Shown: positions 11,213 to 28,685 of the stretch, one piece after another | Layout of the letters: each line of letters starts with the position of its first letter | Position numbering within the stretch: position 1 is the stretch's first letter | Assembly (NCBI GenBank): GCA_009103225.1 | Contig: RHPI01001202.1 | Coordinates: forward strand, 57,206-121,205 | DNA from: Chlorokybus atmophyticus | Taxonomy: Eukaryota > Plantae > Mesostigma and Chlorokybus algae | Direction: 5' to 3' | Length of the DNA: 64,000 bases | Translations under genes and position numbers: made by a program | The notes under the pieces: generated by a model | Database searches by the model: none | Told to the model about the DNA's origin: nothing | What the model saw: only the letters and a program-made list of their open reading frames with translations

Positions 11213-11249
11213 NNNNNNNNNNNNNNNNNNNNNNNNNNNNNNNNNNNNN
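11213..11249. other. Assembly gap (N run) flanked by poly-C
   Basis: Ns in the sequence. Confidence 1.
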
Positions 11250-13211: not shown

Positions 13212-16116
13212 ATGGCGGCTCTGGCTGCGGCGGCGGCATCGGCAGCGGCGACCTCAGCTCCCAGAGCGCTGTCGTCCGAGTTCCTGCTGGGCACCGGGGG
13301 CCCGCTGCAGCCCTGGCGACAGGCGTCGGCGCAGAGGCTGGCGCTGCGGGCACCTGTGGCTCGCGCCGTCGCCGCCAGCAGCAGCAGTAGCAGCAGCAGC
13401 AAGGCCGCCGACCATGATCACCCGATGGCGCAGGCGGTGCGCCGCCGAGTTGAGGCGATCGATCAGAGGCTGCAGCAGAGCCAAGTGCTTCAGCAGGTCC
13501 GCAAACAGCTGCTTGCTTGGAAAGAATTCCGCATCAGAGCGGACAGCGAGCATCGCGGGCTTCAAGCTCAACTCACAATTGATACAGTGGTCATTACGCC
13601 TCGCCACACAGCAATGGCGACAGCGATTGCTGTTGATTTCGCAACGTCCTGCTAGCTTATTCCTTGTTCAGTATCACGTTGATCAGGCGGGCTGTCCTGC
13701 TGTTGCGTACAGCTCGTTCATGATTGAGAGAAAAATGCATGCTAGCAATTACGCTATGTACGTTGAACCAATCAGTAGCTATGCATTGTCAACTCTCTTA
13801 CGTGTCTAGTTGTGGCGCCTTCATTGTTGAGCACAAGAGTTAGCGACAGTGTTGCCCTTGCCACAAGAAGCCAACAACAAATTGGGGATGGCGTAGGTGA
13901 CTGTGCTTGCTCTGTTGCTCAGTCTGTTGGCACGAGATTTGTTATGTATGTCCCCAGTCGTTGCACATGACTTGCAGTGCACGAGCAACTCACGTGAATG
14001 ACGTGTGGAGCCCTTGCATGGCTGTCGTGGATGCAAACTGCTGGTGATCTTTCCCTGCAGCAAAGGGTGGACGACAGCGAAGCAGCAGATGTGGATGGCG
14101 TGGAGGAAGAGGGCATGGAACATGATATGATGAGGGAGGAGTGTGGGGTTGTGGGCATTTGGGGAGATTCTGAAGCTGGACGATTGAGTTACTTGGCTTT
14201 GCATGCGCTGCAGCACCGAGGGCAGGAGGGCGCTGGTACGCATACTCTACTCTTGCACGATGCATTGCTGACTTGGCCATGGCGCATCTTTCAGTGTCTC
14301 TCGGTCCTCATATGCTCTTCATGGCGTGACACAGTCTCTAGCGGGGCTTTCCATGCTGTTTTGTCCCGTCCTTAGCATTGGGAGTTCAGCTGAAATGTTG
14401 TACGCGATGAGTTGTATTGTTGCTATTTTTGTTAGAAGCAGATAAGGTTGTGCTTAATTGTATAAGTGCAGTTGTGACCTTGTGCTGTGATTGTAGAACT
14501 TGTCGGTAAACTCTGCGCATACATGTACCCTGCTTTATTGTGTGGTAAGATGCAGTTCGTGACATGCGTAGAGGTCTGCGGAGGTTTGTGCCACTGCGCA
14601 AGAAGACAACAGCTTGCCTGCTGTTTGACTGGAGTTGACCTGCAGGTGTTGTGAGTTGTCAACAGGGCAAGATGCACTCCGTCATTGGCAAAGGCCTCGT
14701 GAGTGATGTCTTCAACGGCAACAATCTCAAAGATCTCGTTGGAGATCTTGCTGTGGGTCACGTGCGCTACGGTACTGCCGGAGACAGGACCGTGAAGAAT
14801 GTGCAGGTGCTTTAGGAGTTGATATACATGAGTTTGTAGGTATTGCAGAGTATCAACTCAGTAAGAGACATCTGACTTGTTTGGTCTGTGCAGCCCTTCA
14901 GGGCAGCATATCGCTTCGGGCAGGTCGCCCTTGCACACAATGGCAACATTGTCAACTTCAAAGAGCTCAGGGATGAGCTGGAGGAGACTGGAGCGATTTT
15001 CAACACCTCCTCCGACACAGAGGTGAAGCGATTGGGCCGTGTGCACACACGTGTGGGCGCTGACTCTCTGTGGGTGGTCAGGTTATCCTGCATCTGATTG
15101 CACATAGCAAAGAGGACTCCTTCATTGCGCGTCTGGTGCATGCCTGCGAACGGCTGCAAGGCGCGTATTCTCTGGTCTTGATGACAGAGAAGCAGCTTGT
15201 GGCGGTGCGAGATCCACACGGCTTCCGACCCCTCGTGATGGGCCGCAAGGGCGATTCGGTTGTGTTTGCCTCAGAAACATGTGCCTTGGACCTGATTGGT
15301 TACAAGTACGAACGAGAGATCGCGCCAGGGGAGGTGGTAGTTGTTGAGCAGGATAGCATCAGCTCCCTGTGCTTGCTGCCGGAGCAGCCACGCAAGTCCT
15401 GCGTGTTTGAGCACATCTACTTTGCTCTGCCAACATCCATAGTGTTTGGGCACAGCGTGTACAAGTCAAGGTATAGGTTCGGGGAGATCCTTGCAGAGCA
15501 GTCACCCGTCGATTGTGACTTGGTGATCGCCGTGCCAGACTCCGGCATCGTGTCTGCACTGGGCTTTGCTGCCAAGGCCGGAGTGCCGTTCCAGCAAGGC
15601 CTGATCCGATCGCATTACGTTGGCCGCACCTTCATTGAGCCCTCGCAGAAGATCAGAGACTTTGGTGTGAAGCTCAAGTTGTCTCCCGTACGGCCGGTGC
15701 TGGAAGGCAAGAGGGTCGTGGTGGTGGACGACTCCATCGTGCGAGGCACCACCTCCATGAAGATCGTGCGCATGCTGAAGGAGGCCGGCGCCACGGAGGT
15801 TCACATGCGCATCACATCCCCACCCATCACGGGATCTTGCTACTATGGCGTGGACACGCCCAGCAGGGAAGAGCTGATCTCGTGGCGCATGAACACCGAG
15901 GAGACCTGCAAGTTCATTGGTGCAGACTCGCTAGCGTTCCTGCCACTCGACAGCCTGCATGACATGTTGGGCGAGGAGGCGCCCACGTTCTGCGACGCTT
16001 GCTTCTCGGGCGATTACGCAATACCGCCTCCAGAACTTAAGGCACAGCAGCAGCTGGTTGCCACGATTGCAGCGGAAGGCGCCGATCAGCCGACAAGCGT
16101 GCCAGCTGGTGTTTAG
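13212..16116 (+). CDS. purF: Amidophosphoribosyltransferase (glutamine PRPP amidotransferase), plastid-targeted
   Basis: Ala/Ser-rich transit peptide; REECGVVG (N-terminal nucleophile Cys), [34 protein letters not shown]-binding [13 protein letters not shown] and C-terminal [10 protein letters not shown] Fe-S motif. Exons at about 13212, 14061, 14646, 14894 and 15081-16116. Confidence 0.97.
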
Positions 16117-18731
16117 ATGCTGCTAGTGTATAGCTCCAGCATGACGAGCTTCATAAGTTCTGGGTCTGTAGGCTTGTTACAGCAAGCATCAACCGTTATG
16201 ATGGCCATGGTAGTGTTGCTTCTTGCCTGCTATGGTGGGCTGTAGCCATTGGTGCAATCTTGTTTGGGAACAACATTGTTATTCTCTGCCCTTCAACACA
16301 CGCAGGGCCTTGGCATTGTTACTTGTAGCCTCCCTACTAGGGACAGGACATGCAATAAGGAAAACTGGTCATTGCTTGTTGGCAATGACACGCACAAACT
16401 GTGCTTGCCGGGTTTGTGACTATCTTTGTTACCTACCTTGCTGCCTTGTTGTTTGTGCTTATGGTGCAATGTCAACACCTCTAGAAGGTGCGTTGGACAA
16501 TACCATACAAAGATTGCACAGGTATTTTCACAAATGCCATTCAACAAGTGTTGATGGATTACTATTACTATCCCTTTTTTAACCCTTGTTAAACACTTTG
16601 CTCAACCCCAAAACTACATTATGTTACACACTCACTTCACAGCATGATAATTCATAACGAATTTACAGCTTCATACTGAGATACCAAGTTATGCATTGTA
16701 ATGGCTCTTTGAGTTTGCTTTACTGCAACTCTTGTGAGTTATACTATACGCAATTGATAATGAAGATTGTATCATACACCTTGTGTCTGCTTTGGCTATG
16801 TCGGCGAAACTTTATATTGTGGTGTCCTGAGCTTACCTTTTCATGCAGATCGCTACGTACAGAGCACACTTTGTGCATGAGCTGGTCGTGTTATTGACAC
16901 TTTGGTCGTTGCAGAGTACAGCCAGTGCAAGTTGACTGCGCGCTTGCAACGAGCTTTAGGTGATAAGTATTGGTATGTGTACTCTGAGTTGTATTTGCTT
17001 TGGTTGGTGTGCAGCCAATTGCAGGACGGCGTGGCACGGAGGTGAGGGTGATGATCATCCTTATGCACGAACATCACTCACACTGACAAAAGACACAGGT
17101 AAGTTGTGGTGACATGGTGCGGGGAGCATGCTGTGCCCGCACATGCAGGGTCAGGTCGTGCTTGCACATTGTCAACTTGACCAATTGCGCATGCTCGCAT
17201 GCTCACACTGCTCACTAATTGTTGTTCTCCTGCTCTAATGCTGTTTGTGTCTCATGTCGTGGTGCATGCTTGCAAACTAACGGCTATTTACCCTAATACG
17301 CTAACTAGCTACTTTGCAGTGTTTGATTGTCGTTGCTGTGACAGGGGTTGGTGGCGGTGTTGAGTACGAGGGCGCGGGGGGTGTGGCACTTCGTCAGCAC
17401 GCAAGCACCACACATTGCACAGCACTCCCACACTTGCCGAGCCCGCAAACTCACAAGCGCTCTATCTCTTTCTCCCCTGCTCGGCTGCTGCTAGTGGTTG
17501 TCCGTTGATGCTGCCATTCCTGCTCTGCACGCACATATTGAGGTGTAGTGGTGGTGTATCGAGTGGTTGAGTTAAGCGGTGGCCAGCTGCACCCTCCGGC
17601 CAAATTTTATGTTATCTTGTGCGATTGAGTTGTTCTACTTGTCTAGCTATGGCTTCATGCATGTTTACAATACCATATACAATGTGTATGGTGAAACCAA
17701 TCGTCAATTGACCACCAATTCGGATTTGCATTCTGTCAATGATAACAACTTTCTTTTCTCAATTTAAAAGTTGGGTTGGCAATGAGACGGTTGTAACCTT
17801 TACGTATTGTATAAGCAAAACATGAAGCTTTGTGACAGCATTTCATACTATACACGGTCTACTAATTTTGTTTATGGTGTACTGCCAACATGACAAGAAA
17901 CATGAAAGACATTACGTTTCTGATCCGGTTCGGCGCCAGGCTGAGAACCGGTTTCCCAGCAGCTGCCGCTGAGTACGGGGCTGGCGGCGGCGTTAGCCGC
18001 CTCATACTGCGCCCGGTACTGCCTGTTGCTGACGGGGAGGGGGCTGGACGGACGCAAACGTTCGCTGCCTCGCTTTTCCCGCCAGGTACGCCGGTAGAGG
18101 CCAGGCTCTCCTGGCCAGGCTAGGCCAGGCCAGGCCAAGAGACAGCTGTGGACTCATTGTTTGTAGTTGCACTTGGTTTGTGAGTGTATGGACGAGGGTG
18201 CTCAGCTCGCTTTTGTTCAGGCGGTCTTTCTGTAGGCAGCTAAAGCTGTAGTGCCATGGAATCTGTTTGTGTACTGTAGCGCCGCTTCATCCGGCCAAAA
18301 GCTAAACAACAATATGGTTTGTTTTGAAACACCGTTGGCTCACTTTCCAGCTCAACCGTCGACAGTAGCAGCTGTGATGCCGCCTGGGCATTGACAAACA
18401 AGCTGAACATTGACTCAGAAATGCGCTGCACCCAGACACCGCCATTGCAAACAACAACACCCTACAGCTTATTGTTTGACAGTAGAGCACATCTCGCGTA
18501 AGTCTATTGTTGCTGACAGCAACAGTTTCACGCAAGTAGCACCAGCAGCAGTTCTCCCCGCGCAGCATTCGCGCATGCTGACTATGACTTGTTCTGCGAG
18601 TGCAAAGCAGAGGTTTGGCGTGTTTAACAGGCTGCGGTCCCTCACTTCCCCCCTTTGCTCCGCCAATAAACTATTACCATGCAGGCACAGTTACAACTTG
18701 CATCGCTTAATGCAAGCATTTGCACCCCCCC

Positions 18732-18915
18732 NNNNNNNNNNNNNNNNNNNNNNNNNNNNNNNNNNNNNNNNNNNNNNNNNNNNNNNNNNNNNNNNNNNNN
18801 NNNNNNNNNNNNNNNNNNNNNNNNNNNNNNNNNNNNNNNNNNNNNNNNNNNNNNNNNNNNNNNNNNNNNNNNNNNNNNNNNNNNNNNNNNNNNNNNNNNN
18901 NNNNNNNNNNNNNNN
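18732..18915. other. Assembly gap (N run) flanked by poly-C
   Basis: Ns in the sequence. Confidence 1.
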
Positions 18916-19395
18916 CCCCCCCCCCCCCCCCTCCTTTTCCAGTATGCACTGAACTGTTGGAGAAGGCTAAAGTCAACAGCAGCGAAGAACACTGAACAGG
19001 TGAACACTGGACAAGTGGTTGGTTAATTAATGAACAGCTGAGCCAACAGCGCTTACAGTAAGGTAGCTTGCGCCATGTGCGACAGTGCACCGAAACAGGG
19101 CACAGTCCAACACGCTGCAGTTGGTTAGCAGTTCTTTGTGAGACTGCACCTCACCACCTCACTGAAACGTGCACACACTCATCCTGTCTCTGTTCTGAGG
19201 GCGAAGTGGACCATGGAACAGCCAACCTACCATTTGTATGCTTGCCTCACGACATTCAATTCCATGCTGGACACAACCAACTTGTTAAACATCACAAACA
19301 GGTGGGGAAAGAACATGGCAAGGCTCCGCTCAACATGCAACGAAGAAACAGCGGTGAGCTGGTTATGAGGGCAGCAGGAGTTGCAGTAAGCTCCA

Positions 19396-22300
19396 ATGGA
19401 GGTGGAAGAAAGTCAGGACTCCTTGCAACAAGCATTGCAGCAGCACCAGCCACCATCAACCACATCCCCACAAGTAGCAGCCCTTCAGCACCCGCCAGTG
19501 GTGTTTGGTGCGTGCCAGAGGGCCATCCCGCTGGCCGCTGGCGGCGTTGCCGTAGATGGATGCCAACGCTTTGACCCTGAGACACGTGATGGTGGACCTG
19601 GATCCATGAGATGCGTCGCGTGCGGATGCCATCGCAACTTTCATCTTCCTGTTGGGGTGGGTTGTACACCGACAGGCAGCAGCAAGTTGAGTGTGTATGT
19701 TACTGCCACCTCAGACCTTGTTAAGTTCTCTGTCTTCCTCTTGTGTGGCAGGCGGCTGCTGTAGACATAACAACTACACACACAACACCACCTTCCTTGT
19801 CTGGTGCCCACCACGCAGTGGACGGCTCTGGAGACTTGCAACAAGACCAGAATGCAGTTAATGGTGGGCGTGTCATGCCATCATGCGCTCACCTCTTGCA
19901 TGAACCTGATTGAATGTATTAATTGAAGTTGACTCATCTGTGCGTGAAAACCCGCATGCAGGCACTGAAGAGTTTGACCCGGCTGTTCAGGATGTGGCAA
20001 CCGCGCAGCACGAGCTGGCCATTGTTGACTCATCGAATAGTGACTATCAACAACAGCAGGAGCATGCACAGCAACAGCAACAACAGCAACAGCAGCAACA
20101 CCGACACCAATTGCAACATCAGCAACAGCTTCTGCAACAACATCAGCAGCAGCAGCCCCACTTGATCCTGGCTACGCATCGCGGCAGAAGCTCCGAGCAT
20201 GCTTTCAGACCGTTTGAGCAGGTACTGAGTATCAAGTTGCTTGGTGTTGTATTGCGACACATACATGTGAACGCCACGCCTTCAGCGTGCCCGCACGTGG
20301 TTGTGTGATGAGTGCCTTTTCCCATCTACCACCAGGCACGAGAGTATATCTGGGGACTTGGAATGAAGACGCGTGAAGAGTACAGAGAGTGGAGCCGCAA
20401 GAACGTTCGACCACCAGACATACCTGGTGGGTGTTTGTCTGTCGTCGGCAAATGCACTCTCGAGCTGAATGTCGAAGGATGTACTACATGTGTCAAGCTG
20501 TGGGCTGCGGGCATGCTTGACATCTGCACTTTCCTGCAGGCGATCCAGCCAAAGTGTATAAGAATGCCGGGTGGATATCGTGGATGGACTTCCTCGGCAC
20601 ATGCAAAGGCCGTCCCGCACACGTCGTCTTCCGCCCCTTTGAAGAGGTAAGAGAGTTGTCAACGTGTATCACATGCAATCCGCTGTTGTTTCAGCAGACT
20701 AAGTCAACTATGCATCCCAGGCTCGCGCGTATGTATGGACCCTTGGCATCAAGTCCATAGACGACTACTACAAGTGGGCAGCCTCCGGCGCACGACCACC
20801 CGATATCCCATCCAACCCGGACAAGGCGTACCGCGGCCAGTACATATCCGCTCCAGACTGGTTAGGAACACAGAAAGGCCGTCCAGCCAAACCACCCTAC
20901 CGTGGCAAATACAGGTACGTGCATGTGTGCGTGTGCGTGTGCGTGTGCGTGTGCGTGTGCGTGTGCGTGTGAGCATGCGCGTGCGTGTCTGTTGTGCATG
21001 TAAATCGTAGTACACAGGTGGGCGTACGTAGCTTATGTGCATTCATTGTTAAGCTTGATGATGTTTGGTATTCTCAGATCGTTTGAGGAGGCTCGCGAAT
21101 TTGTTTGGACGCTGGGCTTGAAACACCTGTCCGACTACCACGCGTGGAGCCGCTCCGGCCAGCGTCCGCCGGATATCCCCGGCCACCCGTGTGTATTTTA
21201 CTCGGACAAGGGCTGGATATCGTGGCCAGATTGGCTCGGGACTGAGAAGGGTGTGTTGCTGAGTGTAATGTCACATACTTTATCTCCCCTTGTCAAAGCA
21301 TTTGCTTTGGCTTATACGAAATGCATTCATTGCAACAGGGAAGCCCAAGCAATTGCATGGGGCGGGCTTCCGCACCTTTGCTGAGGCCCGCGAGTATGTT
21401 TGGACTCTTACCATCAAGTCCGAGCCCACTTATGCCGAGTGGAGCAAGTCTGGAGGAAGACCCAGGGACATACCTGCTTGTCCACACCTCGTGTACAAAG
21501 ACCAGGTAGGCTTCGCGCTAGCTGTTTATTGTCATGACCACAAGGTGTTCATCATGTGGACACCCTACCAACCTCACCTCAGGGTTGGTTGTCATGGGCG
21601 GATTTTCTCGGCACTGCAAAGGGGCAGTTGTCTAAACCTCGGCCGATACTCAACAAGGTATGGCGGTGAAGTCGCTCTTACATTCAGTTTGCTCTGACTT
21701 GTGGATGCAATCTCATACTGTAACCCAGCATGCGCCGGAGGGTGTTCGACCGTATGCGGAGGCGTGCCAGCTGGTGCGTTGGGTTGGGCTCAAGCATAAG
21801 CGTGACTATGATGAGTGGGTAAAGTCGGGAGAGGCGCCGGCAGATATGCCGCTGCACCCAAACAAGGTACAGCCGCACTTCGCATGCATGCATGAACGAT
21901 TTGGTTTTGGATTGTATAAACATCGGGCTTTCTCTGCGCCATGCGCACCTTGACATGTGTGCATTACACAGGTGTATCGCAACCTTGGCTGGACTACATG
22001 GGGCGAGTTTTTCGGCACCTCTGCAGCCATGCCTGCCGTCCTGCCCACAATCTTCAGGCCTTTTGAAGGTGATTGCCTTTTGCTGATGTGCACGAAAACC
22101 CTGTTACACATACCCACTGTGTGGAAAGCCCTCCTGTTCGTGCAGATGCGCGGGAGCTCATTTGGAGTCTAGAGTTGAAGAGCCTGGATGACTACCGCGC
22201 GTGGTGTCGCAGTGGTGAGCGGCCAGAAGACATCCCCGTGCATCCTGAGACCGTTTACGTGGACAAGGGATGGCTGAGTTGGCCGGTGAGTACCCGTCGC

Positions 22301-23766
22301 ACGTGAGTTGCGGTGTGTTGCAACACCTCGTGTGGTAATGTGGCTCACCGGTGTGTGTGCAGGACTGGCTTGGGGTGGAGAAAGGACGTCCCGGACCACG
22401 TTATGCGCATGTGTTAGCATATGAAGAGGCCAAGGAGGTGAGGGCATAGCGGCGCTTGGTCATGATGCTTTTCGTGTGTGCTATGCCACAAATGCATGAT
22501 TGTTGGTGTGTTCTTCTCTGCAGGTCATGAGGTTTGAGGGTCTGGGCCTGCGTGCGCCAGAGCAGTACTACGAATGGTGGATGCGAGGAGACATACCGGA
22601 GGGCTTGCCGCAACGACCTTACGATGTCTACAAGCGCAGGTCTGCACAGGCATATGCCATGTATCGTACTGCTGTTTGAGCCCCTGTTTTGATACTGAAC
22701 GGCGTAACACAACAGAGGTTGGGTTTCTTGGGATGACTTCTTGAGCGTCGAGTATGCTGTAGAAGATCAGGATCAGGACCAGCATCAGCACCATGATCAA
22801 GAGCACCTCCAGGACCAGCTTCATCCAGATCAGGACCAGGAGCAAATCCAGGAACACGACGAGTGCCAGGAACAGGAACAGGACCTTGAACAGGTCCAGG
22901 ATCAGGATCAGTGTCTGGATCATGGTGCTGATGACAATCAGGATCGGCTCCACCACCATCACAAGCGTACGCACGATCAGCAGCTGGAGACCAACCTCGA
23001 CACGTACGGCATGGCTGATGAGGAGGATGCCGAGCAATGCGCAAAGCGCCAAGCGGTTGAAGAAGAAGAAGAAGCAGAGTTGAATGAGATGGTGCGAGCA
23101 AACTGTACCATGGGTCCTGTTGTGTCCCCAAGCACATCATGTTGTACTGGCTGCCAATAGCAATGTTGGGCTTTGCCTGTGTCTGTAACATCCACATAGG
23201 TATATAAGAAACCTCTGCCTTGGTGCAGGTGGTTGTGCCGGAGGACCATGTGGAGCAAATGGTGGAACAGGGGATGGACGAGGTCAGTGTGACAATGTCG
23301 CACCTCATCGTTGCATGACAGCTGGATGCATGTTGAAGTTATTGTTCACTCTAACATCCCATACCTGCCTTTTTCTGTCTTGCGGCTGCAGATGGATGCT
23401 CTGGCTGCAGCTGATGCAGAAGAAGCAGCCATAGATGAAGGCAATCAGCTTCCAGAGCAAGAGCAAGAGCAGGGTGGTGCTGCAGAGCCGGAAGGCGACA
23501 TAGAGCACCTCCAGGGTCTTGAGGTCCAGCACCCCAAACACGTCCAGGAACAGCAACAGGAAGAGGAAGAGAAACAAGAACAGTTGCAATTACAACTGGA
23601 ACAGGAACAATTGCACCAGGTCCAAGACACCCTGCAGAACCAGGATCAGGATCAGGACCAGGACCAGGACCAGGACCGGGATCAGGATCAGGATCAGGAT
23701 CAGGATCAGGAACAGCTGCAAGCGCAAGTGGCACAGGAGCAGCTTGAGGGCCATGAGTCCTTATAG
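19396..23766 (+). CDS. ZF-HD dimerisation zinc finger + poly-Q linker + 7 integrase-repeat-like units + acidic D/Q/E tail
   Basis: Exon 1 carries VVFGACQRAIPLAAGGVAVDGCQRFDPETRDGGPGSMRCVACGCHRNFH (ZF-HD_dimer pattern). About 15 in-phase GT-AG exons follow, encoding seven ~55-60 aa repeats of consensus RPFEEARExVWxLGLKSxxDYxxWxxSGxRPxDIPxxPxxVYxxxGWxSWxDxLGT. Stop at 23766. Confidence 0.88.
23638..23712 (+). repeat. (GATCAG/GACCAG)n hexamer repeat encoding (DQ)n
   Basis: Directly visible in the last exon of the ZF-finger gene. Confidence 0.9.
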
Positions 23767-24551
23767 AGTGACACACAGAGCTAGCGACTGCCTACTGCGT
23801 GCTTGAACTACAAGTTCGTATCTTTTATTCAATACCTAACTGTACAGCATTGAAGTGGCTCAGCGCCTACCCGCCTGCTCCCTTGATAATGGGAGTTAAT
23901 ATGCATTAGTAATCAACCCGGTGGTCGCGCTAGCCTACTGACAATGTGCCTATGGTCGTTGCTGCGCGCGGTGGTAGCAGTTTTGGGAATCGTCTGGAGC
24001 AATGGAAAACAGCAGTAGTACTTCTGCAGCACGAAGCATGACAACAATTGTTACTATGAACCGTTTGTCGCATGCACAATAAATTCTAGTTGCATCTTAG
24101 ACCCATTCAGCTCCGTTGCTTCTCACCCCACCCCCCCAAACCCAAAAATGCCATCACCATCACCATGCGCAACATGCATGCATGCACGACAGTGACTCAG
24201 CTCGTCATTTCGGGGATAGGCGGTTAGCTTGTATTCTATATTGGATGTGCATGCTCATGAATATCTATTATATGACACGTTGCACGCGCAAACCAGACAG
24301 AGTTGTGCAGTGTATATGACAACTTATCTTTTCACGGTCATGAGGTATGCTACTTCCATTCCAGGATTGAACTACACCCTTAGTACAGGCCAGAGTCCAG
24401 CAACCTATCACGACTTTCTAAACAGCATATTCGACATCACAAACTCCCACCAGACGCAGTCAAACCTTTGCATATACTCTTATCCACATAACATAGAGCA
24501 TTGTTTCTACGCTTATTGTTTAGTGTAATGCTAGTGTCTTCATCATTTTGC

Positions 24552-27500
24552 TTACTTCCGCGTGCCAGAGTTCCGCAGGCGCAACGCGACATAGAAAAGG
24601 AATCTGTACAGAATGGTAAACCTGCCACGCGACACAGTCATCAGCACCCAGTTGCATCCACCCATGGTGATCTGATGATGGTGTGAATGCAATTTGCTTG
24701 CTTGCTTACCCAATCAGCGCGCCAATGCCTGTCCAGCGGTTGGTGCCGCCCATGTCGCTGTCGTCCAGAAGTTGTTGTGGAGTCAAGAAGCAGTCCCCAG
24801 CGGGAGCTTGACCAGAGCAGCCAAAGTGCGTGTCGCTCGAGAACCCTCTGAACAAATTGACCACAAAACTGTCGAACGCATACTTGAATAGGCTGATGTA
24901 GTAGATCCAGATCCACCACCCGGGAATATCGCCTCGCTTAATGAAGAACCCACTGTAACCGAGGTGCTGTTAGGCTCATGGACAACTGTGTATAACAACT
25001 TTGCATTGTACGCTGCACAGAGTTCTATGAGGGTGCACACCTGAACAGGAACATGAAAGCAAACAGTGCTGTAATCATGGAGTTGCCGACCATGAAGTTG
25101 GTCACCACGGCACTGAAGAACATGACAAAGGCGTTTGCAACGGCCAGGATAACAAAGAGCGTAAGTACGAAGAAGAAGAAGTTGCCAGCCTGCATCATAA
25201 GCAATTGCATATCAGCTTTGTCTCTGATTGTGCAGTGGCAACGCGCGATATTGCTGTGTGAGAAGTGCGCTGAGTATGGAGTATGTTGGTCACTCACTCC
25301 GCCTGGAAGTCCAACGAGCCACCATGTGACGAGAGGGTACACAAAGGCGATTACAGCCATGAAAGGCAAGGGTGTAAATGTGTGCGCCAGGACATACGAA
25401 GATGTGCGGTAGGCTCCTCTGGAAGTCTCTCGCGTGAAGATGTTGCGCTCGAGCAGGAAGATTGGAAGCGCTTCAGCAGACGTAAAGATGAACAGCGCGG
25501 CCGCGTATGCAACAAAAGCCTGTGTTTGTGCAAGTTAGCATAGAGAAGGCATACTGCTTACAGCGTACTGTTGTCAAGTGTTGCAGATGATGACAAGCAT
25601 ACCTTGTAGTTCTGATAATCGCTGTAGGTCTTGTCCAACCGAAGGAACAGAGTCCCAGAGACAATACCGACACCAACTGCAAGCCCCAACCGGGCGAAAA
25701 AGAGCTCCTTCGTACGGAACTGATTTGTGAAAATGCGGTTGGCAAGGATGGCAACCTCCGTCAACGGCGTGTTGGCGTAAGGAGGGCGTGTTGACTCTTT
25801 TGCTGTCGCCTTCGCCTTGGAAGCGTACTCATCTTTGATGATCTGACTCTCTGTCTGCCAGTGACATGAACAGCTTTGCATTAATAAAGGATGTAATATA
25901 CTAATATGGGTACGGAATCATCTACTACTACACCAGACCCAACAGAACGGTACCTTGGGTGCGTCCTGCAATGAGCGCGAGGGTGGACCCACCGTCACCA
26001 CCCCTTCCATAGATGTACGTCTGTGAATCTTGTAGAACTCCTCGAGTGGCTGCAACACCAGCACTAGATGAGTTCAAAGCTTGCCTGGCATTGGTGCTAT
26101 CACCAGTGAGTGAGCTGGAATTCTTACCGCAACGCCTTCATCTTGCACCTTCAGCTCATCAACGATGTCGAGCGCAAACTCAAATGAGTTCATGAAGTTG
26201 GGCATGGGGCGACCGTACGTGGCAAAGAACTCTCTGTGGAAAGGTGGGACTGTTGGTGACGTGTGAGCTGCATGCAGCAAGCACCATCACGATAAAGTCA
26301 GTGGCTCACCCAATGAGCCTTGGCGGACCAGCATATACAAGCTTGCCACCGGACAACACGAGCACTTTGTCGATGAGCTCGATAATACGGGAAGAGGGCT
26401 GATGGATGGTGAGCACCACTGTACGACCAGAGCGCGCAAGATCGTGAAGGCTCTGGCACACGTTCAATGCACTCTTGGAGTCGAGCCCGGAAGTTGGTTC
26501 ATCTAGGAAGATGAGAGCTGGGTCGTGAATCATATCTACACCAATGGACACTCGTCGCCGTTCACCACCTGAAGTAACCCTTGCACGTCAGCTCAACACT
26601 TGACTGGGTGTGCAGGACATGTGTGTGTGCTTTTCACTGCAGTTGTCACCTGAAATGCCTCTGTGCTGCTCGTCACCAATGATACGATTGGCAGTGTGCG
26701 ATAGGCCAAGCTCAGCAAGAGTCTCAACCACACGCCTGCAATGCACATTGTGATGTTGGATACTTGTACATATATAGACTTACTGCAAAGTGCCGACTAT
26801 CAACAGCCCAATGCAACCAAGCCTGCAATGCCTGCCTGTCATGCAGTGCACTTACTGCTGCTTTTCAGCTAGAGGCATCCTCCATGGAAGCCGCAAGCGA
26901 GCGGAGTACAGCAGCGTCTCTTGCACGGTCAAGAGGGGGAAGAGCGCATCATCTGATAGGCACAGCGAGTCATCGCACTGCTTCGTGTGGATTGCGTGTA
27001 GTAGCATTACATGTCACAAAACTGCTTCATGTCTGAACAGTGCACTACCTTGCATGACGTAAGCAGCGCGCTTGCGAAAGCTGTCATCAACAGGTGTGCC
27101 ATTGACGAGCATGGTGCCCTCAATGCTGGACCGCAGCACACGCCCAGCGAGCACATCCAGCAGTGTGCTCTTACTGTTGTACAGAACCACAGAGCAGTTG
27201 CATTGAGTAATCGTTGCAACCAAGCCAGGGGACTCATTCACCTCAAGCACTGCATAATACTCACCCGGCCCCTGACTGGCCAATAATGGCCATGAGCTCG
27301 CCGGGAACAGCAGCACCAGAAATACTGTCAAGCAGGACCAATTCCTTCTGGTCTTTCTTGCCTCCCGTCATGACCTGCTCACTGCCTTGTCAGCAACAGT
27401 AGCAAGCAGCTTGAATCTACCACGCTGACCATGCTGCTGGGTTGCTATAGTGCATTTCATTGTTGAAGCATGCCTGCACCTTGTATGAGATCTTGGAGAA

Positions 27501-27629
27501 CTCCAGGCGGCATGGGGTGATGGTGAGCGTCTTGCGAATGACGGCGGGATTATCATCGCCAATGTTGATGGTCAGCGACTCGACCGCGCCGTTGGGCGGC
27601 GTCGCCACCTCCAGGGCGCCTGGCGCCAT
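24552..27629 (-). CDS. ABCG half-size transporter (WBC type)
   Basis: Walker A GQSGAGKST, signature [12 protein letters not shown] and Walker [14 protein letters not shown]. The TMD includes FRTKELF and [11 protein letters not shown]-terminus [23 protein letters not shown] ends at 24552. Confidence 0.95.
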
Positions 27630-28685
27630 GACTCCTGGTTGCCTTCACCCTGCGCCAATGCCTACTGAACAACCAATCCAAGACAAAAGGTTCAGTTAAA
27701 GCACTCAGTAGTGCAGAAAGCAGCAAGCGGCAAAGTGGCATTGACTCTGCTCGAAGCCATTGTGAGCGCAAAGCTTTCACAAAGAAACTGACGATCCGGC
27801 AAGCGGAGCTGCTCATGGCACTCAATGTGAGCTTGCACGGGAGCACTTGATGCATTACAGCCAACGACAGCCAACAGCAACGCCGCACACAAGTATGAAC
27901 CAGCAGAAAGCATCCAGGCACCCACAGCCACGCTGCCTCCGCATGCACTAGCAGACAGGCAACCCGGCCAGAGGCTCCCGACAACCCGGCAATGCAGCAC
28001 AACGACGCAACCACACAGTCCGACCAGCTTACCAAGAAGGCAGTACACAGCAGCTTCACCGCTGATCCGCCGGCTCCGCCTTCACCGCCGCCGCCTCCGC
28101 CGCCGCCGGCACCGACACTACCAACTCCGAGAAGCTGCTGCGCTTGGCCTTTTCAATGTGACGCCTAACCAGGCCCGTTCAGCTCCTAACATGGTTAATT
28201 TAGGTGTAAGTACCTTGTCTTAGAGGGGCAACAGCGGAGTTCATAACCCTGATCTGGTCTGAGACAAGAGAAGTTCGCGGTTAGCGTGGCCGGCGGCACG
28301 TTCGGCATGCCAGCGTACGGAAAGCCACGACCCGCCCGATGGCACGATGCGACCGGTGCTTTTTCTACTGGTCGCGTTTTTGCTGTTTTCGGGAGCGTGT
28401 CGCTGCTGCTTACGAGGATTCCAAGTTGGAACTTCCAACCGTGACATGCATGTGCACATTCACAACGCTTTGCGCACCGGTTGTCTAGCCGGGTCACCGC
28501 CCGGGTATGAAATGTAAATGTTTTTACATCCGGGCCGTGACCCGGCTAAACCTGTTCAAGAAACACCTGGTACACTCAGTCATCGTGACTCAATGAGACA
28601 TTCAAGCTCATCACGATCTCAGTTTCATGACCACCCTACCAAGTCAAACACTGTTAACGACAGCAGGTGCATGTCATTGCTTGAC

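Follow-up and report, generated by a model that had tools for sequence, protein, structure and literature searches.

The window analysed here is a stretch of 64,000 nucleotides of Chlorokybus atmophyticus (contig RHPI01001202.1), and on its forward strand the coding region between positions 19396 and 23766 was resolved into 17 exons, which add up to 2811 nt, that is, 936 codons and a TAG stop, as read from the three-frame translation of 19300-23800 and the raw sequence. The encoded protein carries an N-terminal ZF-HD zinc finger, a linker rich in glutamine and histidine, seven tandem Trp-rich repeats that homology assigns to INT_rpt (PF14882), and a long acidic tail, with the finger exon and the repeat exons lying in one mRNA and one open reading frame (ORF). 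The locus is a real nuclear gene of Chlorokybus, it is expressed, and it joins two known modules in a new combination, for which we infer a function below. The ATG is at 19396, with an in-frame TAA directly 5′ of it at 19387-19389, and the stop is at 23764-23766. None of the 17 coding exons contains an in-frame stop ahead of the TAG, and introns interrupt six codons, which after splicing specify Gly, Gly, Arg, Gly, Asp and Arg; a single reading frame thus runs unbroken through the 936 codons. The features of the gene, including those of its untranslated regions (5′UTR and 3′UTR), are as follows.

18058..18085, + strand: non-coding 5′UTR exon, 3′ end, its 5′ limit unmapped; the loose end of the X1 contig matches 18058-18082, and CAG with a GT donor stands at 18083-18087
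18086..19301, + strand: 5′UTR intron, GT..AG, about 1.2 kb, with the assembly gap 18732-18915 inside it (X1 contig)
19302..19395, + strand: 5′UTR portion of the first coding exon, towards the end of which the in-frame TAA stands (X1 contig and sequence)
19396..19656, + strand: coding exon 1, 87 aa, with the ZF-HD_dimer finger at residues 35-83, about nt 19498-19644 (Pfam PF04770)
19752..19863, + strand: coding exon 2, linker, no domain (translation, X1 contig, Pfam scan)
19962..20221, + strand: coding exon 3, Q/H-rich linker of 86 aa, the final six codons of which open repeat 1 (translation, X1 contig)
20336..20646, + strand: repeat 1 and a basic KGRP linker, in exons 4 (20336-20426) and 5 (20540-20646) with an intron between them (repeat alignment, X1 contig)
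20721..20914, + strand: repeat 2, entirely in exon 6 (repeat alignment, X1 contig)
21078..21250, + strand: repeat 3, entirely in exon 7, the unit used for the single-repeat fold (repeat alignment, X1 contig, structure model)
21339..21657, + strand: repeat 4, in exons 8 (21339-21505) and 9 (21583-21657) (X1 contig, repeat HMM)
21729..22068, + strand: repeat 5, divergent, in exons 10 (21729-21866) and 11 (21972-22068) (X1 contig, repeat HMM, tree)
22146..22437, + strand: repeat 6, in exons 12 (22146-22285) and 13 (22363-22437) (X1 contig, repeat HMM)
22524..22770, + strand: repeat 7, degenerate, in exon 14 (22524-22639) and running into exon 15, which opens at 22716 (X1 contig, repeat HMM, tree)
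22771..23766, + strand: acidic D/E/Q-rich tail, starting within exon 15 (which ends at 23091) and continuing through exon 16 (23229-23282) to the TAG that closes exon 17 (23392-23766) (translation, X1 contig)
23767..24019, + strand: 3′UTR, at least to 24019 (X2 contig piece 23859-24019)

The transcript evidence came from five public runs (X1 to X5), with whose assembled contigs the stretch 18950-24300 was compared. A single 2832-nt contig of run X1 spans 19299-23626 and includes the finger exon and all the repeat exons with every intron spliced out. Fifteen GT..AG joints in this contig coincide exactly with the exon borders, and the 16th intron (20915-21077; intron 6 of the gene), inside which a (GTGCGT)n microsatellite lies at 20927-20968, is spliced out too, as two pieces that adjoin each other in the same X1 record show. 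The 25 loose nucleotides at the 5′ end of the contig match 18058-18082 exactly, and a 5′UTR exon and the 5′UTR intron listed above are therefore placed in front of the coding region. Run X2, from a separate study, has the last joint in common with X1 and adds the 3′UTR piece, and the pieces of run X3 are unspliced, hence DNA. Five substitutions and an in-frame deletion of 3 nt separate the X1 contig from the window sequence, so that the contig stems from another strain or a close species. These results bear out most of the sequence-only reading of the locus, which had proposed, at the same coordinates and on the same strand, one gene with a ZF-HD finger, a poly-Q linker and seven spliced Trp-rich repeats, and with no homeodomain.

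The public annotation of the locus gives a different picture. The repeat profile search retrieved a 627-aa protein from EukProt (EP00898 Chlorokybus atmophyticus, jgi/Chlat1/7245/Chrsp58S06888; P0005 hereafter) whose sequence agrees at 100% identity with exons 8-17 and with a portion of exons 4-5. The start of this public model is a Met within exon 4, and exons 1-3 with the finger are absent from it; a jump from the interior of exon 6 to that of exon 7 also removes parts of repeats 2 and 3, and its 3′ end differs from that of the 17-exon model. The X1 contig supports the 17-exon model over Chrsp58S06888. Since the public model is truncated and mis-spliced, the architecture is absent from proteome-derived catalogues, and architecture surveys based on proteomes cannot have seen the fusion.

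In a direct hidden Markov model (HMM) check, exon 1 matched the Pfam family PF04770 (ZF-HD_dimer) with 62.8 bits (E 3.8e-17, gathering cutoff 27) over profile positions 2-50 of 55, and all of its 30 nearest clusters in the ESM-Atlas were PF04770 clusters, mostly from Streptophyta. The exon 1 translation shows that the second half of the finger, C-x2-C-x-C-H-x3-H, is intact and that the first Cys and the Cys of D-G-C are kept. No homeobox family matched any exon of at least 20 aa in the Pfam scan, and with the ORF closing at 23766 and the following gene on the minus strand, no further exon can supply a homeodomain. A PDB sequence search with the finger returned no match, and a word search with exon 1, which covered proteins of 48-152 aa only and is uninformative on long fusions, gave six candidates, none of them significant. 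The sequence-only reading had called the finger a streptophyte-type module, which is doubtful, as ZF-dimer domains have been reported in bacteria, archaea, fungi and animals (PMC10415114). About 10% of the plant ZF-HD genes have an architecture other than ZHD or MIF (PMC10415114), and HD-PLINC is listed as a gain of the streptophyte ancestor (PMC7027972, PMC7455551); the supplement of PMC7027972 mentions neither PLINC nor this gene.

The linker encoded by exon 3 holds 28 Q and 9 H in 86 residues. It is followed by repeat units of about 57 aa (roughly 60), which are rich in tryptophan, with 27 Trp in the 453 residues of the repeat exons. The repeat pieces of the window itself were aligned exon-wise (A1); this alignment was the basis of the repeat profile and gave the consensus F-x-x-F-E-E-A-R-x-x-V-W-x-L-G-L-K ... 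Y-x-x-W ... G-x-R-P-P-D-I-P-x-x-P ... Y ... G-W-x-S-W-x-D-W-L-G-T. The HMM built from the window repeats found seven units in P0005, with 60-113 bits each. The linkers that follow the LGT motif are basic, such as KGRPA, KGRPAKPP and KGRPGPR, and the tail contains 80 D/E versus 8 K/R in 249 aa, with a (GAT/GAC)CAG run at 23644-23709 that encodes D-Q repeats. The repeat part of the gene has 12 spliceosomal introns around and within its exons; four of them recur at the F-x-x-F-E-E|A-R position of the repeats and others differ in position, a pattern that would suit a nuclear gene of long residence with an old internal duplication.

The assignment of the repeats to PF14882, which the sequence-only reading had made from likeness, failed in the direct check, with no match at E ≤ 1 for any repeat exon against the PF14882 INT_rpt model (cutoff 26.5 bits) and none at E ≤ 0.01 for P0005; single repeat exons likewise had no Pfam or NCBIfam match. 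It held by homology to relatives that carry PF14882 and by structural comparison, and by this transitive, profile-based and structural evidence the repeats are assigned to the INT_rpt family. Among 1.84 billion representatives, the A1 profile detected 7752 clusters at E ≤ 1e-3 and 1839 at E ≤ 1e-30, and the family is distributed over bacteria, phages, giant viruses and some green algae; the relatives inspected were the best 150 of the profile matches and the best 120 of a word search with P0005. The best profile match (P0001; 17 units, E 6e-299) scored 62 bits with PF14882, and its PF14882 match (residues 493-516) falls inside one of the units that the window profile marks in it (461-528). Precomputed PF14882 labels were found on most of the 120 best word-search relatives, some of which the JGI had named ‘Phage-integrase repeat unit’, and in an ESM-Atlas feature search exon 7 adjoins INT_rpt clusters (0.94). 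The Pfam PF14882 model is thus narrow and under-detects its own family, because members such as the window repeats and ORF338 of the Xanthomonas jumbo phage XacN1 escape it despite strong homology. The closest non-self relative of P0005 among the matches listed from a collection of 5.8 billion proteins is only 41% identical, so the collection holds no full-length orthologue of 345-1097 aa.

The model of a single repeat (exon 7) reached a predicted local distance difference test (pLDDT) of 93.5 and a predicted template modelling score (pTM) of 0.75, and predicts a four-helix fold of two longer and two short helices (residues 2-12, 17-25, 37-40 and 49-53). It superposes on ESM-Atlas clusters labelled INT_rpt with template modelling (TM) scores of 0.89-0.97 and a root-mean-square deviation of 0.5-1.4 Å over 56-57 residues, and the matching clusters are labelled INT_rpt together with helicase, phage LAGLIDADG endonuclease, IS66 transposase, DUF559 and DUF723. 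In BFVD the single repeat matched giant-virus helicases of Klosneuvirus, Bodo saltans virus and Marseillevirus, while a PDB sequence search with the repeat profile gave no match. A model of four repeats (P0005:146-425, that is, window exons 8-15) had a mean pLDDT of 86.9 and a pTM of 0.44, which is consistent with an array of well-defined beads on flexible linkers. A Foldseek search with this four-repeat model was rejected as meaningless, the beads having no fixed mutual orientation at that pTM.

For the partner-domain scan, 81 non-repeat segments were cut from the best 150 profile matches and compared with Pfam. Helicase_C was present in 38 of the 81 segments, ResIII in 23, Mrr_cat_2 in 17, DEAD in 15, SNF2-related in four and Methyltransf_8 in three, and further partners were MTES_1575, DUF559 (Vsr-like nucleases), GIY-YIG and one protein with Ank and RING. 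PF04770 occurred in none of the 81 segments, and the finger was found in none of the 254 fetched relatives, which were searched by phmmer with exon 1 and by the Cys/His pattern. No other fetched protein combines the finger with INT_rpt and no paper describing the combination was found, in agreement with the earlier proposal that the architecture is undescribed.

A tree of 107 repeat units was built over 58 columns; its support is weak, and the columns are too few to polarise a transfer. Units R2-R6 group with those of the Chlorokybus paralogue Chrsp98S08475 (P0100), and the Chlorokybus units stand near units from Pycnococcaceae and from a set of contigs of the European Nucleotide Archive (ENA), apart from most named bacterial units. 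The bacterial P0002, whose contig neighbours are PIN, rve and HNH, nests among the Chlorokybus units, and no donor can therefore be named. One ENA contig (ERZ25071366 ctg20099l; L004, 144 kb) carries several INT_rpt proteins of 39-40% identity and many short unannotated ORFs with faint FHA matches, and looks eukaryotic or giant-virus with prokaryotic gene calling. The suggestion of the sequence-only reading that the repeats are virus- or prokaryote-derived would fit a family that is mostly prokaryotic or viral; on the other side stand the 16 introns of the coding region and one of the 5′UTR, the paralogue, the copies in Pycnococcus and Pseudoscourfieldia, and the non-polarising tree. An old transfer of the repeats is possible.

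On each side of the gene lies a different one. Upstream, at 15070-16116 on the forward strand, is a large ORF in a single exon that carries GATase_7 and Pribosyltran domains, a PurF-like amidophosphoribosyltransferase; downstream, at about 25000-28000 on the minus strand, are ORF fragments with ABC-transporter motifs and a Walker B/signature-like stretch at 26306-26551, probably from an ABCG-type gene. Assembly gaps (runs of N) in the window lie at 18732-18915 (184 nt, in the 5′UTR intron), 11213-11249, 39353 and 53823.

We propose that the protein is a transcription or chromatin factor of this algal lineage, a reading to which we give a probability of roughly one half. Its parts are an N-terminal finger, a disordered Q/H-rich linker, seven INT_rpt mini-domains on short basic G-K/R-P linkers, and the long acidic tail. 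The ZF-HD finger mediates pairing in plant ZHD and MIF proteins, and by analogy the finger of the Chlorokybus protein may pair it with itself or with other ZF-HD-finger proteins. The repeat array would replace the homeodomain as the part that docks to nucleic acid, probably DNA: the repeats are taken for a nucleic-acid-targeting module because the partner domains of their relatives are usually helicases, restriction or homing endonucleases, transposases and methyltransferases, and the basic KGRP-type linkers point to nucleic-acid docking too. The acidic and Q-rich parts would serve as an activation or chromatin-contact region.

Several observations weigh against this reading, and part of them favour other explanations. 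No function has been assigned to INT_rpt in the literature by experiment or paper, and no solved structure resembles the repeat, with the best hit of the VIA-wide search at Z 3.4 (the C-terminal part of RepB) and no credible Foldseek match in the PDB. With a net charge of +9 in 453 aa, the repeats are no more than mildly basic, and the protein as a whole (936 aa) is very acidic. The architecture might thus be real and the INT_rpt array a scaffold for proteins or other ligands, with the protein acting as an adaptor; the lack of a solved counterpart of the fold among DNA-binding domains, the nearly neutral net charge of the array, and the relatives that pair the repeat with ankyrin and RING or with no enzyme domain speak for such a scaffold, but the partner domains are overwhelmingly DNA/RNA enzymes and the linkers are basic, and we regard it as rather unlikely, though to be taken seriously. 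The finger has a weak point of its own: the signature of the PF04770-type ZF-dimer comprises five Cys and three His (PMC10415114), of which, read by eye, seven of eight are kept, the His four residues after the first Cys being replaced by Ile, and this change may impair zinc site 1 and dimerisation. A finger-less isoform may also arise from the exon 4 Met, as the start of the public model suggests. Together with the paralogue P0100, which has repeats without a finger, the His-to-Ile change and the exon 4 start favour a decaying finger that no longer dimerises, in what would be a working INT_rpt protein like Chrsp98S08475, perhaps made mainly from an internal start. This is less probable than the scaffold, as the finger scores far above the cutoff over 49 of the 55 profile positions, its C-x2-C-x-C-H-x3-H half is intact, and the X1 contig, alone among the transcript contigs in reaching over the gene's 5′ half, carries it in frame.

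The remaining alternatives concern the gene itself. The records of X1 to X5 are assembled contigs, with no raw reads, and their library type is RNA by guess only; the public annotation, moreover, does not join finger and repeats, so two adjacent genes might have been merged by chimeric transcript assembly or read-through. The fully spliced X1 contig can hardly be anything but RNA-derived, however, and the 16 GT..AG introns, the one frame through 936 codons, the lack of a stop or second start context between finger and repeats, the bridging of both by exons 2-3 in the same record, and neighbours on both sides that are clearly other genes make such a merger very improbable; chimeric assembly was rejected on the continuous frame. 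Hardly more probable is a recent horizontal acquisition of the repeat array from a bacterium, phage or giant virus, or contaminant DNA, for which the mostly prokaryotic or viral nature of INT_rpt and the grouping of the bacterial P0002 (contig with PIN and rve) with the Chlorokybus units could be cited; against it stand the introns around and within the repeat exons with their recurring position, a GC content of the locus that matches its surroundings, the second Chlorokybus gene with related units, and the presence of the family in Pycnococcaceae algae. Contamination or recent transfer was rejected on the introns, the GC content and the paralogue.

A bolder extension may be considered, which we regard as rather unlikely: a free-standing ZF-HD finger would have existed in the earliest streptophyte algae and been combined with varied DNA- or chromatin-reading parts, INT_rpt would be an unrecognised eukaryotic DNA-binding domain from bacteria or giant viruses, and the gene would represent a new class of transcription factors. 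Were this true, finger proteins without a homeodomain might account for part of the published counts by which HD-PLINC is dated to the streptophyte ancestor. Apart from this extension, the lineage that is sister to all other streptophytes uses the ZF-HD finger outside the pairing of finger and homeodomain, which bears on how the ZF-HD/HD-PLINC class was assembled, and the placement of INT_rpt, whose thousands of clusters have neither a known function nor a known structure, at the usual site of the DNA-binding domain gives a testable hypothesis.

Compared with the plant ZHD (HD-PLINC) and MIF proteins, the Chlorokybus protein has in common the N-terminal PF04770 finger with its C-x2-C-x-C-H-R-N-F-H core intact and the low-complexity linker that follows. 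It differs from ZHD in having no homeodomain, and from MIF, which consists of the finger only in about 100 aa, in its length of 936 aa and in its seven repeats and acidic tail; its finger, as read by eye, is one signature His short of both, and its gene has 16 introns in the coding region. The paralogue Chrsp98S08475 (783 aa) is alike in its repeat array and its long acidic/Q-rich region, with an acidic Q/E/Y-rich N-terminal region of 436 aa followed by five repeats with very basic linkers, but it has no ZF-HD finger. The ‘methyltransferase domain-containing’ proteins of Pycnococcus provasolii and Pseudoscourfieldia marina (P0166, P0167, P0173) likewise share the repeat array and not the finger. 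ORF338 of phage XacN1 (BBA65486.1; 309 aa) contains the repeat, with an hhalign probability of 97.3 to the window profile and 36% identity by tblastn, has no finger and is unrecognised by Pfam; it is annotated as ‘hypothetical protein’ (L001:2770-3699) and adjoins RNase H and DNA polymerase genes. With the INT_rpt (formerly PHINT_rpt) proteins of bacteria, phages and giant viruses, the Chlorokybus protein has in common the unit of about 57 aa, the predicted four-helix fold and the consensus F-x-E-A-R ... P-x-D-I-P-x-x-P ... Y ... G-W-x-S-W-x-D-W-L-G-T, and its seven units compare with the 5-17 tandem units of their arrays. Unlike those arrays, that of Chlorokybus is split by introns and has diverged so far that the Pfam model misses it. 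Whereas the prokaryotic and viral arrays are joined to nucleases, helicases, transposases and methyltransferases, as in P0007 and P0012 (Mrr_cat_2 with ResIII/Helicase_C and repeats), the phage LAGLIDADG endonucleases and the Klosneuvirus helicase, the Chlorokybus array stands between a eukaryotic zinc finger and an acidic tail.

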